Below, piece after piece: positions 35,966-62,234 of a DNA stretch of 64,000 nt (within the stretch, counting starts at the first letter, position 1; every line of letters begins with the position of its first letter). The stretch is taken from the sequence record PQ390715.1, one strand, 5' to 3'. The position numbers and the translations under genes were made by a program. Below the pieces are notes generated by a model, which was given only the letters and a program-made list of their open reading frames with translations, had not been told where the DNA came from and searched no databases.

Positions 35966-36558
35966 TATTCTTCCTTGAAAAATGTAATAAAATGTTCCAT
36001 ATGTTTTTCGGTGGCATTGCGTGAACCAATACCAGTCCAGTTACCATGTGGTGCTGGAACGACGAATGTTTGTGTGAACTCTTTCAGTACTGTATCGAAA
36101 TAAAATACTGAACGTGAATTCATATCATAACAATAAATTTCAGGATTTTCAACTGAATCCATATACATCTGTACTGCCCATGCAGTACCACCACTTACCT
36201 TAGTTGGTGATGTGATATTTGCAATACAATATATTCTTTCTGTATTAAGTATCTGATAACTATTCCTTGCAAGTAAGTTGTAAACATAAGAACCAGGTTT
36301 TGGTACTTTTCGCTGCAACGAGTAACATGCAATGTTTAGTTGATTTAATATAGAAATATCAGATAGAATATTGGATGGTATTTCTAATATAGTACTTTCA
36401 TCTACACTATGCTCATGACCTTTGAATGAAAAATTAATAACTTCAAATCCATTATTTTTTGCATAGATAGAAAAAAGGCGGTCAGCACCTGCTGCCCCGC
36501 CACTAAAACATACATTAGATAAACCTTTAATTGCTTCATCTAATTCATTCTTTTTCAT
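35965..36558 (-). CDS. SLOG-superfamily (DprA/YspA/LOG-like) Rossmann protein
   Basis: FSGGAAGAD, ARNSYQI, SGGTAWAV and TGIGSR motifs; its stop overlaps the thyA start. Confidence 0.6.
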   Translation of the reverse strand: MKKNELDEAIKGLSNVCFSGGAAGADRLFSIYAKNNGFEVINFSFKGHEHSVDESTILEIPSNILSDISILNQLNIACYSLQRKVPKPGSYVYNLLARNSYQILNTERIYCIANITSPTKVSGGTAWAVQMYMDSVENPEIYCYDMNSRSVFYFDTVLKEFTQTFVVPAPHGNWTGIGSRNATEKHMEHFITFFKEE

Positions 36559-36561
36559 ATT

Positions 36562-37218
36562 TTATTTTGCTTTACGTTCTGCAAATAGTTGTTTTACTTT
36601 CTCAATAGCTTTAGTCTGTGAAATACCTTCTGGAATTTCTAGATAAATTGTTTTACTATCTTTCGGTTGTTCAACAACTTGTGTTTGCGGACGCAAGCTT
36701 GGCTCTAAATTGTATGCACGTTCATAATGTTCTTTAGCCAGTTTTTCATATTTTTGTGCATCAGTGAGAAGTTGTTCTACAATAGTAGCTTCTTCTACTT
36801 TAGTGTCCGCTTCTTGTGGATTGAATGGGTTAAAGTCTTTTACTTTACCATCTTCTTGTACTTTCGCTTGATTTTCATCTAATGCTTTGTTTAGAACATC
36901 AAGAGAAATTTTATTATTACCACCAGTGTGCATATCAATGTCACAAGTACGAACGCGACGTAGATGCTGCATGTTGTGTAGAACATCTAGCATTTTGCGT
37001 CCATCGAGATAACCAATTTTATGCATTACTTCCCACAAATCAATATTAGATTGACCATGACCCATAACAATATCAGTTACTGCGTGTACATATGCTTCTG
37101 GTAGTGAATCACGATAAACGATAAGGCAGTGTTCAGGATCATCTGGTAGTGAACGCCAAACAACAAAAACACGAGAACCTGTATTACGCATTACACCAAC
37201 ATGACGAATAGCTGCCAT
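36562..37218 (-). CDS. Conserved hypothetical phage protein
   Basis: 218-aa ORF in the early operon with SD GGAG. Confidence 0.7.
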   Translation of the reverse strand: MAAIRHVGVMRNTGSRVFVVWRSLPDDPEHCLIVYRDSLPEAYVHAVTDIVMGHGQSNIDLWEVMHKIGYLDGRKMLDVLHNMQHLRRVRTCDIDMHTGGNNKISLDVLNKALDENQAKVQEDGKVKDFNPFNPQEADTKVEEATIVEQLLTDAQKYEKLAKEHYERAYNLEPSLRPQTQVVEQPKDSKTIYLEIPEGISQTKAIEKVKQLFAERKAK

Positions 37219-52957: not shown

Positions 52958-53749
52958 TTAACCAATAATCATACCTAGTGGTTCAGCACCATCTTGATAA
53001 CGTTTCAAACGCTCTTTAAGCTGTTCCTGAAGTTGTAATCCTTCATTACGTAATGTATCACCATCCATAGAAAACGTTCCCTGTGGACCTGGAAGAGAAG
53101 CAAATTTGGCACGGTTACGACCCAACATAATCATGGCTTCAGACAATGCCCAATCACGTAGCCAAGGATAACTTTGCTGTCTTTGAAACAACAATGGTTC
53201 AGGAATATTATGATATACGTGTAATAGTACTTCTTCAGTACCGCGAATATCACGATCTATAATTAATTTTTTGGTCATTGGGTTAAATTGAAATATAATA
53301 TCACGACCAAACATACGACCTACCAGTTCTTGGAACTGAAAACTAAAATCATATGTAGTTAGATCATATCCACCTGCATTTCGTGCTGAAGTCAATAAGT
53401 AAGTGTTGGTGAATGCTAGAGAAAACGGATCTACTGAGTTCCCACTACCAGAACTTAAGTAACCATTACCATAACGATAAATCTTTTTAACAATTTCAAC
53501 TTCAGTTGGTAGCATATATACAGATTGTGAATCATAAAATTTCATATTTAAAAATGCTTCTTCTTTAGAAGCAGAACTCCACGCTCTGTAATTCGATACC
53601 GCATTATCAATTGCAATTTCTAATTGACCATCAGTAATTTCTACCTCAACGGCCCCAGCACCCAACATTTGAGTGATAACATCTTTCAGTTTTTCACGAT
53701 GGTCAAAGTTAGGAGCATCAGGGTTTCCACCCATATAATCGTAAGACAT
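52958..53749 (-). CDS. gp13: Neck protein, T4 gp13-like
   Basis: LK..I..MLGA..VEVEITD.QL..AID.A and WLRDWAL...M..LG..RAKFA.LPGPQG....DGD.L; start at 53749 follows GAGGT. Confidence 0.9.
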   Translation of the reverse strand: MSYDYMGGNPDAPNFDHREKLKDVITQMLGAGAVEVEITDGQLEIAIDNAVSNYRAWSSASKEEAFLNMKFYDSQSVYMLPTEVEIVKKIYRYGNGYLSSGSGNSVDPFSLAFTNTYLLTSARNAGGYDLTTYDFSFQFQELVGRMFGRDIIFQFNPMTKKLIIDRDIRGTEEVLLHVYHNIPEPLLFQRQQSYPWLRDWALSEAMIMLGRNRAKFASLPGPQGTFSMDGDTLRNEGLQLQEQLKERLKRYQDGAEPLGMIIG

Positions 53750-53754
53750 AAAAA

Positions 53755-53794
53755 AGCACCTCATTAATGTTTATATACATTATTTAGAGGTGCT
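53755..53794 (-). promoter_or_regulatory. RBS-sequestering hairpin enclosing a late promoter (gp13)
   Basis: mRNA AGCACCTC-TAAATA...-GAGGTGCT, then 5 nt to the ATG. Confidence 0.75.
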
Positions 53795-53799
53795 AATAG

Positions 53800-54018
53800 T
53801 TATTTTGAATTATACAAGCAGTACAGGTATACCAATGGAGTAAAATGCTCGGAATCTATTATATATATTAACTGAGTAACATATATTCCATATAGATCTC
53901 GTGATTTATCTCTGTACATTAACAATGATTTATTTAAGTAAGGATCAACCCAGTACTTAATATCATTGTACTTCAACGTGTTATTACGGTAACCTGACAG
54001 TTTCGAATTTTTATTCAA
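53800..54018 (-). CDS. Hypothetical protein
   Basis: 72-aa ORF overlapping the upstream stop codon. Confidence 0.5.
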   Translation of the reverse strand: MNKNSKLSGYRNNTLKYNDIKYWVDPYLNKSLLMYRDKSRDLYGIYVTQLIYIIDSEHFTPLVYLYCLYNSK

Positions 54019-54388
54019 TTTTCTTACAATTACTCAGTAAGTGAATGATATCATCAGCAGTGAATGGTCCCAATACCAGAACTTCTTCACCATTACCGAA
54101 AATGCTCAATGGTACTGATTGCTGACCAGCTAGATATTCAATTTGTTCCAGTTCGAAAATGTCATCAGCAGCATAAACTACCTGCTCCATTTCATTATCT
54201 TTAATCCATGACTGCCAATGTTCTTTAAACTTCTTAGCTTCGTATTCTTGAACATAGTTAGGTGATTCAGGGTTGTATTGATGTAACATAGTCATCCCAG
54301 CCATTACTAATTCTTTAGGGGATGGTGTAGAATCTTTCAGTACTACGATAGCTTGGATAGTTTTTACTTTAACGTCATTAGCAGCCAT
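54011..54388 (-). CDS. Pth2 (peptidyl-tRNA hydrolase 2)-fold protein, degenerate
   Basis: QAIVVLKD...W.SW...VVY.ADD..EL..I...A....VP.SI...VLVLGP...D.I follows the Pth2 pattern, but GKxxAQxxH and DAGxT are absent. Confidence 0.5.
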   Translation of the reverse strand: MAANDVKVKTIQAIVVLKDSTPSPKELVMAGMTMLHQYNPESPNYVQEYEAKKFKEHWQSWIKDNEMEQVVYAADDIFELEQIEYLAGQQSVPLSIFGNGEEVLVLGPFTADDIIHLLSNCKKIE

Positions 54389-54728: not shown

Positions 54729-55205
54729 TTATTTTAGAATGTATAAGTGTTTTTCTGCATTGACCAGTCGGTGATCAATGATTTCTTTGATAACGTTCCA
54801 GTTACCGCCGCCCAAATCGGCTCCAATTTTCGGGAAGTGTACATGAACATCTCGATCAACTTTACAAAAATAATTTAGATGTTTGAACACATCGTCGATT
54901 GCATCATAACTGACATATTTAGCACCGTCATTACCGTACATTTTTTGGGTAATACAGTTTGCAATAATCAAATTATCGTTAATTGCTGAATATGCAATTT
55001 GTCCAATTCTAAGAAATCCCATTTCCTTTTCATATGCTTTATAATCATCATATGCCATTGGGTAACGATTTCTTAGCTCTTTTGCAAAACCTGAACCCAT
55101 TTTACCCTGTGCGTTACAACCATGAGCAATTATATGTATTGCTGTTTTATCATCTGTAACAGTACTGAATAATTCAAACAGATTACCTCGGTGTTCATGA
55201 ATCAT
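54729..55205 (-). CDS. Macrodomain (ADP-ribose binding/hydrolase; T4 tk.4/Poa1-like)
   Basis: GNLF, IAHGCNAQGKMGSGFA..L...YP and FPKIGADLGGGNW. Confidence 0.9.
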   Translation of the reverse strand: MIHEHRGNLFELFSTVTDDKTAIHIIAHGCNAQGKMGSGFAKELRNRYPMAYDDYKAYEKEMGFLRIGQIAYSAINDNLIIANCITQKMYGNDGAKYVSYDAIDDVFKHLNYFCKVDRDVHVHFPKIGADLGGGNWNVIKEIIDHRLVNAEKHLYILK

Positions 55206-55254: not shown

Positions 55255-55512
55255 TTATTCTTCTTCACCGAAACGGATTTTCTTTAATTCTTTTCGATGC
55301 TTTCTAGCTATTGTACTTTTGTGAAGTCTATTACTGCGTTTTGTGTCTTTTGTAATGTACCATGAATCTTCTGGTGCATCATAATCACAAAATCCATCTT
55401 CCGTAATTGTTCCTAAAAATGCAGATTTTTTAGGAATATTAGTTTGAGCTTTAGCCTGAAATTGACCTTTTGCTAATTGTTCACGAAAACTGAGCATAAT
55501 AGTATCTCCCAA
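55255..55512 (-). CDS. Small protein with basic C-terminus
   Basis: 85 aa (probable ATG at 55497 after GGGAG); TAAATA at 55545-55550. Confidence 0.6.
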   Translation of the reverse strand: MGDTIMLSFREQLAKGQFQAKAQTNIPKKSAFLGTITEDGFCDYDAPEDSWYITKDTKRSNRLHKSTIARKHRKELKKIRFGEEE

Positions 55513-55543
55513 ATTGTTAAGAAGAACTTTTTGTTCTTCACAT

Positions 55544-55795
55544 TTATTTAGGGTTGCCAGAAACCTTCACATATTTGATAAATGCCAAAATATCATCTTT
55601 ACTAAAAGATTTTACAATAAATTCGACAGCGGAATCATACTGTTCTTGTTTAGATAGATATTCTTTCATCTTGTTAATTTTAATCTGGGCTTTTTCTTTA
55701 GCTATTGAAATATCAGGAATTTTGAACTCTACTCCCAACGTATCAGCTAGTTGTTTTGCACGAGATGATACTTTTTCAATATCCATTAGTTCCAA
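55544..55795 (-). CDS. Hypothetical protein
   Basis: 83 aa overlapping the glutaredoxin stop codon. Confidence 0.6.
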   Translation of the reverse strand: MELMDIEKVSSRAKQLADTLGVEFKIPDISIAKEKAQIKINKMKEYLSKQEQYDSAVEFIVKSFSKDDILAFIKYVKVSGNPK

Positions 55796-56509: not shown

Positions 56510-56537
56510 ATTATATCAGTTATTGGTTTTTTGTCCC
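56510..56537 (-). promoter_or_regulatory. Early promoter
   Basis: GGGACA-16nt-TATAAT, same pattern as 37501-37528. Confidence 0.6.
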
Positions 56538-56545
56538 ACTATTTT

Positions 56546-61470: not shown

Positions 61471-61827
61471 TTATTTCTTGTGTAAAGGTTCATCACTTTC
61501 ATAATAAATTGTATCATTATTTCGCTCTATAGTAAAGCTCTTTTGACACAACTCTTCAGCTAAACCCTTTGCATAGTTTAATACATCTCGGTTGAGATAT
61601 ACTTCTTCTTTTGGAAAGCGTGGGTACTGAATAATACGAGCACACATCCCACTTTCAAGACCGCCAGTGTAGATATATTCACAGGGAATTAATTGTACAC
61701 AAAAGCCATGCTTAAACGCAAACTTTCTTGTGTACTCTCTTGCTGTTTGAATATCACCAGCAATATGGATATTCCAGTACTGTGTCTCCACTGTACCTTT
61801 ATCGATGTATTTCATACTCATCTCCAA
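61471..61827 (-). CDS. Conserved hypothetical phage protein
   Basis: EYIYTGGLESG...IIQYPRFP motif seen in diverse phages. Confidence 0.7.
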   Translation of the reverse strand: MEMSMKYIDKGTVETQYWNIHIAGDIQTAREYTRKFAFKHGFCVQLIPCEYIYTGGLESGMCARIIQYPRFPKEEVYLNRDVLNYAKGLAEELCQKSFTIERNNDTIYYESDEPLHKK

Positions 61828-61844
61828 TTATAGCACTAAAAATC

Positions 61845-62234
61845 TCACTTTCCCAACTCTTCTATGATTCTTTTTATTGAATCATGATTTTCCAGACATA
61901 AAGTACTGTAATTTCTGCCAGTTTTTTCATTGAGGTCGTCGATTTCAATCATAAGATATCCATATGTAATATCTTGAACCCTACTTCGTTTTACCCTTGA
62001 GTACAGCTTGATTGGTACTGATACACGAGTATTCAAAAAGAATTCTGGCAAATCATAACGATATACCAGGTATTCATTCTTGTAACGTTTACGACTGTAC
62101 GATTCGAAACACTGCGGATAACGTCTATCAAACATACTACTTCTTAGTTGAAGTATGATTGGATCTAACTTATGTGAGTAATATTTTTTGATTATTTTAT
62201 CAAATCTTTTTACATGTCGTTTACGCCATCTCAT
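61845..62234 (-). CDS. Hypothetical basic protein
   Basis: 129 aa, coupled to the upstream gene by an ATGA overlap. Confidence 0.65.
   Translation of the reverse strand: MRWRKRHVKRFDKIIKKYYSHKLDPIILQLRSSMFDRRYPQCFESYSRKRYKNEYLVYRYDLPEFFLNTRVSVPIKLYSRVKRSRVQDITYGYLMIEIDDLNEKTGRNYSTLCLENHDSIKRIIEELGK

Follow-up and report, generated by a model that had tools for sequence, protein, structure and literature searches.

The 64,000-nucleotide (nt) stretch analysed here, referred to below as the window, corresponds to positions 248001-312000 of SHEFM2K (PQ390715), with complete identity over its 64,000 bases. SHEFM2K is an Escherichia phage with a 348-kilobase (kb) genome of 34% G+C content, which belongs to Asteriusvirus within the RaK2-like jumbo phage group and, in the stretch tested, is 99.9% identical to PBECO4. 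According to our own gene calls, which agree with the published annotation around the element described here, the minus strand holds 529 of the 572 genes of the phage, and the temporal classes are therefore nearly all co-directional. The element under study is a hairpin lying directly in front of a minus-strand gene for a neck protein and behind a co-directional unit that runs from a macro-like gene to a 72-codon open reading frame (ORF) (Table 1). The product of the neck gene, 263 amino acids (aa) long, is a neck or head-tail adaptor Ad2 protein of the gp13 type (phrog_211, E 1.4e-41), as had been proposed in an earlier reading of the letters (hereafter the sequence-only reading); the records of relatives name the homologue neck protein or Ad2, and that of CBB is marked as a structural protein in the tables of the CBB paper. 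The in-frame ATG at 53764, present in the ORF list, was rejected as the start of the neck gene, as it is not conserved in relatives. The reading of the element as a hairpin that would hide the Shine-Dalgarno (SD) sequence of this gene and hold a predicted late promoter is well supported by the comparative evidence set out below.

On the minus strand the element reads AGCACCTC-TAAA-TAATGT-ATATAA-ACATTA-AT-GAGGTGCT, which is, exact to the base, the string that the sequence-only reading had given in front of the gp13 gene; its placement of the SD in the 3' arm, of TAAATA directly after the 5' arm and of the ATG at 53749 after a further 5 nt likewise agrees with the coordinates. Five T separate the 3' arm from the ATG, and 7 nt lie between the SD, GAGGTG, and this codon. 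RNA folding yields a two-tiered hairpin of -17.0 kcal/mol, in which a G/C-rich outer stem of 8 base pairs (bp) encloses 24 nt. Dinucleotide shuffles average -6.9 ± 2.5 kcal/mol (z = -4.04), and none of 200 is as stable. The model gives the SD a 0.00 probability of being unpaired in RNAs beginning at or upstream of 53796 and one of about 0.37 in RNAs beginning at 53780-53770, in which little local structure is left, around -1.6 kcal/mol for the 46-nt leader. A search of Rfam 15 gave no family match, the lone GcvB match (20.2 bits against a gathering threshold of 42, E 0.2) being taken as chance.

The sequences preceding the neck gene in 17 relatives were folded one by one, and 13 sequences entered an alignment and covariation analysis. 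Throughout the RaK2-like genera, represented by Asteriusvirus, Alcyoneusvirus, Mimasvirus, Eneladusvirus, Munch, Hallingskeid, EJP2 and XaC1, the order of the elements is kept, namely 5' arm, TAAATA, 3' arm with the SD, short spacer and ATG, and the hairpin folds with energies from -17 to -27 kcal/mol. A weaker version of the hairpin, with a perfect TATAAATA, is found in a Vibrio phage whose neck protein shares 46% identity; in PA5oct and Atu_ph07 TAAATA is kept and the folded upstream regions contain no convincing stem. In all, thirteen relatives retain the order of 5' arm, TAAATA and SD-bearing 3' arm, with neck proteins of as little as 46% identity. The arm pairs vary by lineage, the forms being CACCTC/GAGGTG, CACCCC/GGGGTG, CCCCTAAATATG/CATGTTTAGGGG or CCCCTAAA/TTTAGGGG, CATCTC/GAGGTG with G-U pairing, and TCCTCTAAA/TTTAGAGGA or TCCTC/GAGGA. 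Within the 13-sequence alignment TAAATA is the sole invariant block, 80% of the cells of a 12-pair stem are paired, and four of the pairs show changes on both sides. The covariation score of 0.231 compares with 0.123 ± 0.022 for column shuffles, none of 500 of which reaches it, and with at most 0.132 for controls in which the partners were slid. Furthermore, G-U pairs in EJP2 and the GAP32 group keep the RNA pairing, which points to the sense-strand RNA rather than to a DNA palindrome. As judged from this alignment, the pairing of the neck hairpin is maintained by compensatory and G-U changes across several genera.

Further comparative evidence comes from wastewater contigs of uncultured relatives, in which homology with the window stops precisely where the hairpin begins on its 5' side (53794). 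The public sequencing runs yielded assembled contigs, X1 being probably DNA and the others coming from wastewater. The break at 53794, together with the insertion of the 72-codon ORF upstream, indicates that the hairpin travels with the expression unit of the neck gene. Among these contigs, X3, from a wastewater metatranscriptome, joins 53794 to 54061 via 64 other letters and X4 diverges at 53794, both representing uncultured relatives with a short RaK2-like spacer.

The hexamer enclosed by the arms has the features of a late promoter. TAAATA plus the preceding TC forms TCTAAATA, which matches the T4 motif TATAAATA in 7 of 8 positions. Genome-wide, 70 start codons have TAAATA 14-60 nt upstream, with a peak at 24-47 nt; when the count is made in the annotated part of the window, this holds for 13 of 21 structural genes compared with 5 of 40 others (Fisher p = 1.1e-4). 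The preceding base is A, C or T, and CTAAATA is also found before a tail-tube gene. Although TAAATA is 5.5-fold enriched relative to the coding background, this raw value is unconvincing because other A4T2 hexamers are nearly as frequent in the AT-rich spacers, and we base the promoter assignment instead on position, on the link to structural genes and on conservation. In the CBB paper the late motif derived for this group of phages is ATAAATA, and Table S7 of that paper gives Porf_201 (CTAAATATGATATA) before the neck gene and Porf_204 before the sheath gene as putative late promoters, so that homologous TAAATA sites at both genes have already been predicted there. The accessible parts of the text and tables of that paper make no mention of an enclosing hairpin or of SD sequestration, and no terminator is listed at this site in its ARNold table.

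A gp55-like late sigma factor is encoded at SHEFM2K 240629-241468 (minus strand), with matches to phrog_12791, 'sigma factor for late transcription' (3.4e-154), and to phrog_234 (8.4e-18). Direct searches of the SHEFM2K genome with T4 gp55 gave no match at first and E = 0.03 with phmmer, which is too weak, and the assignment was therefore confirmed via PHROGs. The gene, located 6.5 kb before the start of the window, encodes 279 aa, compared with 185 aa for T4 gp55. If the T4 rule is applied, according to which transcription starts about 6 nt past the motif, the predicted late start falls at about 53776-53774 (near 53775), which is within the inner-stem loop and 3' of both 5' arms.

This architecture has a well-characterized counterpart in gene e of T4, for which the 5' ends have been mapped: the long early RNA is translated 100-fold less, and the late RNA is made without the 5' strand of the hairpin (PMC3014915). 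Ribosome-binding-site hairpins of the same class precede T4 soc, 49, 25/26, I-TevI, I-TevII, I-TevIII and segB, as well as Aeh1 mobE, and follow a common logic, in which late genes are carried on long polycistronic early or middle RNA with their ribosome-binding site sequestered, and are expressed from a proximal late promoter (PMC2988022). The neck element shares with T4 e the succession of 5' arm, late -10 motif after or overlapping it, SD within the 3' arm, short A/U spacer and ATG, as well as the location of a late gene co-directionally behind earlier genes; the tool that yields -17 kcal/mol for the neck hairpin yields -13.3 kcal/mol for T4 e, where TATAAATA likewise abuts the 5' arm. The two differ in that the present element belongs to a RaK2-like jumbo phage, outside Straboviridae, and to a neck protein gene, that its leader has one TCTAAATA where T4 e has two perfect TATAAATA, and that its hairpin has two tiers, with a terminator-like T-run behind them; the neck switch is, moreover, a predicted one. 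Most members of the class formed by soc, 49 and I-TevI are homing endonucleases or accessory genes, whereas in SHEFM2K core virion genes (neck and tail sheath) are concerned, and several genera of another phage lineage have conserved the device. Our literature search found no description of the neck hairpin in RaK2-like phages. The principle is that of the established T4 device and is not new, contrary to how the switch had been presented in the sequence-only reading, where the terminator-like T-run was not considered either.

We consider that the neck hairpin is best explained, and probably so, as a temporal switch of the T4 type, acting on a late structural gene placed co-directionally behind non-structural genes. 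RNA entering from upstream, by read-through of the unit from the macro-like gene to the 72-codon ORF and probably initiated at sigma-70-like or middle-type promoters, would carry both arms, and the outer and inner stems would then lock the SD, leaving the neck protein untranslated from this RNA; the T-run behind the stem may also end part of the incoming transcripts before the ATG. At late times of infection, the RNA polymerase of the host, equipped with the gp55-like sigma factor of the phage, would start about 6 nt past (C)TAAATA, and the resulting RNA, devoid of the 5' arm, would form no hairpin, undergo no termination and present an open ribosome site. We infer the firing of TAAATA, the position of the start, the read-in from upstream and the translation block from sequence, conservation and the T4 precedent.

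The neck gene is not the sole instance. A second hairpin with the same design precedes the tail-sheath gene, and is probably the one that the sequence-only reading had counted as its first instance. Its duplex has -18.7 kcal/mol and a 13-bp stem with one G-U pair, the interior is 42 nt long, and no T-run follows. The design is kept in Ecwhy_1, A4, Munch, GAP32 and CBB, the differences in the 5' arm being mostly C/T transitions opposite a G of the 3' arm. The two independent examples put forward earlier are therefore real, and that of the sheath is conserved in five relatives too.

We have investigated the recurrence of the design at the genome scale by two architecture tests, with tandem paralogues collapsed in the first. 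This was a pairing test, in which we took the stretch that begins 18 nt before TAAATA and extends to the predicted start and computed its pairing with the SD segment; a value of -10 kcal/mol or better is attained by 8 of 58 genes, compared with 2.1 when the partners are permuted (p = 2e-4); among genes without TAAATA, 4.6% reach -10 kcal/mol at matched positions. The geometry test took genes with a strong SD-pairing upstream helix and compared TAAATA with control hexamers in switch geometry. TAAATA occupies this geometry in 16 of 123 genes for helices of -10 kcal/mol or better (mean of control hexamers 6.2), in 6 of 22 for -14 kcal/mol or better (mean 1.4) and in 3 of 8 for -18 kcal/mol or better (mean 0.5). 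The accessibility of the 18-nt initiation region, compared between the long RNA and the RNA from the predicted start, shows a weak shift in TAAATA genes relative to matched controls (p = 0.0055), which we do not count as support. Many late genes in SHEFM2K show a plain terminator followed by TAAATA, and the clearest cases of SD sequestration are those of a structural gene behind enzyme-type genes with no terminator between. The SD-locking device thus appears to be a recurrent, minority solution, which from these sequence comparisons would concern roughly 8-16 of about 60 genes preceded by TAAATA. The genome-wide strategy suggested in the sequence-only reading is in this way partly borne out, by a modest 3-5 fold enrichment in both architecture tests; against it stand the small number of genes and the null result for SD accessibility given below.

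The strongest further instance lies at SHEFM2K 179949-180010, where AAAAACTCCAAGATT, TAAATA and AATCTTGGAGTTTTT occur in this order, followed by TTATTATG. This hairpin, with a 15-bp stem, a T-run and -19.8 kcal/mol, precedes a 181-aa gene of unknown function (179403-179948), which is located behind a gene for an ATP-dependent protease. Strong SD-sequestering helices are also found at the SHEFM2K genes 36208-36684 and 61793-61993, outside the window, where the 5' arm contains TGTGATATAAT or GTATAAT instead of TAAATA; the logic of a promoter inside the lock may at these two sites operate for promoters of the sigma-70 or middle type. On the plus strand, at SHEFM2K 85291-97078, about nine tandem paralogues of 370-400 aa (phrog_4219, RCC1-like 'regulator of chromosome condensation') have near-identical upstream regions containing GGCTTTCTTATTTGTATTAAATATAGTATAAT, which inflate motif counts unless the family is collapsed.

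A number of observations weigh against the explanation as a temporal switch. At the promoter, the neck motif is TCTAAATA, short of the full TATAAATA of T4, and homologues of gp33 and gp45 were not found in CBB by the authors of that paper, so that late initiation may differ from that of T4. At the level of the RNA, the modelled short transcript leaves the SD unpaired to an extent of only about 37%; genome-wide, the accessibility of the SD core in TAAATA genes does not differ significantly from that of matched controls (p = 0.076). Also, the upstream stop codon lies 5 nt from the hairpin, and a terminating ribosome could open the 5' arm and weaken the block. Finally, that the upstream genes are early or middle ones is assumed: the 80-aa gene at 55255-55497 (minus strand) is itself preceded by CTAAATA (55497-55550 region), so that some of the upstream RNA could be late and the class of the 'early operon' is uncertain.

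Among the other explanations, termination deserves most attention. The hairpin could be primarily, and as its sole function, a Rho-independent terminator of the unit ending in the small ORF, TAAATA in the loop simply restarting transcription and the overlap with the SD resulting from the compactness of the genome. Indeed, it resembles such terminators in having a G/C-rich stem directly followed by T6, 5 nt past a stop codon. Of 555 genes, only 9 have a T5 run at 12 nt or less from their start codon, and SD-pairing helices precede four of these runs, including those of the neck gene and of 179403-179948; several SHEFM2K late genes, moreover, show a terminator and then TAAATA. However, Rho-independent terminators have loops of 3-8 nt, and those typical of SHEFM2K 4-5 nt, whereas the 24-nt interior of the neck hairpin is large and structured, contains a promoter motif and is closed by a 3' arm bearing the SD, and a simple terminator scan does not return it. 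The U-run, furthermore, is not conserved: it is absent or reduced to at most three T in RaK2, K64-1 (GCTATATG), Hallingskeid and EJP2, in which hairpin, TAAATA and SD pairing are kept. In addition, ARNold makes no call at this site in G17 or CBB, the annotators of Munch marked no terminator here, and the sheath hairpin combines a 42-nt interior with the lack of a T-run. As the T-run is missing in four relatives and the predictors make no call, termination cannot be the conserved role, and we regard the explanation by termination alone as unlikely. A different matter is termination as an added function in Asteriusvirus, compatible with the switch: the rarity of T5 runs and the T6 after the stem suggest that the hairpin may also stop part of the incoming transcription, a possibility that we take seriously while leaning slightly against it. 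More speculative, and in our view doubtful, is the proposal that RaK2-like phages use a three-in-one junction element, acting as early/middle terminator, as lock of the ribosome site and as housing of the late promoter, and that middle-type promoters are housed in the same manner.

Translational coupling, in which the ribosome finishing the upstream ORF would melt the lock and TAAATA would be no promoter, seems to us improbable. It would agree with the location of the upstream stop, about 5-17 nt before the 5' arm in all relatives, where a terminating ribosome, given its established footprint size, would cover part of the arm. Contrary to what coupling would lead one to expect, TAAATA is invariant while the upstream gene changes (the 72-codon ORF in Asteriusvirus, a gene of 120-126 aa elsewhere) and the distance from stop to stem varies; TAAATA is independently linked to structural genes, the 5' arm of the sheath hairpin is about 26 nt from the stop of the gene for deoxynucleoside monophosphate (dNMP) kinase, and it is hard to see why the synthesis of a neck protein should be tied to that of enzymes from another temporal class. 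Least plausible of all is an inverted repeat acting in the DNA, either as an operator for a dimeric regulator at the late promoter, for which two 8-bp half-sites flank a -10-like element and T4 I-TevI offers a precedent of a protein occluding a late promoter (PMC2988022), or as a chance palindrome, since the G-U pairs of EJP2, of the GAP32 group and of the sheath-arm variants would be mismatches in DNA, the arms vary freely among genera where a protein site should be conserved, the SD accounts for the 3' arm, and chance is excluded by conservation and z = -4.

The genes around the hairpin bear on where the incoming RNA would come from. The sequence-only reading had placed the neck gene downstream of a macro/Pth2 early operon. 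Co-directional genes are indeed found there, and no separate terminator occurs from 55223 to the hairpin; the identities and the timing hold less well, as the Pfam hit of the macro-like gene is weak, its early expression and that of its neighbours is presumed, and the Pth2 assignment of the 125-aa gene, found in some GenBank records, could not be confirmed, there being no Pfam hit and a PHROG of unknown function. Nor is this gene the direct neighbour of the hairpin, that place being taken by the 72-codon ORF, whose stop codon, TAA at 53802-53800, lies 5 nt before it. Differences in this ORF at codon positions 1, 2 and 3 number 8, 7 and 25 with respect to ph0011, and 15, 6 and 23 with respect to Ecwhy_1, a distribution indicating that it evolves as coding sequence. 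It is missing from RaK2, K64-1, GAP32, CBB and Munch, and in RaK2, GAP32, CBB and Munch the hairpin lies directly behind the preceding gene, so that, on sequence comparison, the ORF is an insertion specific to Asteriusvirus. The ORF occupies most of what had been a '260-nt intergenic' gap; the SHEFM2K annotation has a 39-aa piece of it only and most records have none, and we found no match in PHROGs or Pfam. Farther upstream of the neck unit, a site resembling a middle-type promoter is found near 56510-56540. Downstream, the order on the minus strand is terminator/promoter, an 89-aa ORF, the dNMP kinase gene and the tail-sheath gene. GGAGTC serves there both as the 3' arm of the terminator and as the upstream element of the promoter, which is of the middle-like type described for CBB as 'TGAAACG ... 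TGnTATAAT'; from its sequence, this predicted promoter would restart the transcription of the 89-aa ORF and of the dNMP kinase gene, both of which precede the sheath hairpin.

Table 1. Features at and around the neck-gene hairpin (window coordinates)
Feature	Position	Strand	Evidence or remark
Outer stem, 5' arm AGCACCTC, anti-SD-like	53794-53787	minus	sequence, minimum-free-energy fold, covariation with 3' arm
TAAATA core, predicted gp55-type late promoter	53786-53781	minus	invariant in 13-sequence alignment; abuts 5' arm
Inner A/U-rich stem-loop	53782-53765	minus	TAATGT 53782-53777, loop ATATAA 53776-53771, ACATTA 53770-53765; fold
Outer stem, 3' arm GAGGTGCT	53762-53755	minus	contains SD GAGGTG 53762-53757
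T5 run (T6 counting 53755)	53754-53750	minus	between hairpin and ATG; possible U-tract, also A/U-rich SD spacer
Neck / head-tail adaptor Ad2 gene, gp13-like, 263 aa	52958-53749	minus	phrog_211; start ATG 53749-53747
Tail-sheath hairpin	51941-51874	minus	TTAAATCCTTCAA 51941-51929, TAAATA 51928-51923, TTGGAGGATTTAA 51886-51874 with SD GGAGG, ATG 51872
72-codon ORF	53800-54018	minus	TTG start overlapping preceding stop; directly upstream of hairpin, last gene of upstream co-directional unit
125-aa gene	54011-54388	minus	named aminoacyl-tRNA hydrolase / Pth2 in some GenBank records only
102-aa gene	between macro-like gene and 125-aa gene	minus	
Macro-like gene	54729-55205	minus	weak Pfam E 0.009; phrog_335 1e-45
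Terminator, perfect 10-bp	55246-55223	minus	17 nt before macro-like gene; no promoter between
Terminator GACTCC-TATAT-GGAGTC-TTTTT	52948-52927	minus	downstream of neck gene; ARNOLD annotation in G17
Predicted middle-type promoter TGGAGTC...TGTGATATAAT	52938-52909	minus	overlaps terminator; matches CBB Table S6 motif type

Taken as a temporal switch, the neck hairpin would extend a classic post-transcriptional device of T4 to a distant lineage, jumbo phages with 350-kb genomes, and there to core virion genes; it also suggests how a single strand can accommodate late genes among early or middle ones. Should the proposal of a junction element that houses promoters of more than one class prove true, the promoter within the lock would be a general rule for such interleaving of temporal classes. 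Compensatory conservation across genera has rarely been documented for leader structures of phages. In practical terms, the hairpin can help annotators of RaK2-like genomes to locate late promoters and true start codons, and those who clone or engineer these phages should consider that expression of the neck and sheath proteins probably depends on the 5' end of the RNA.

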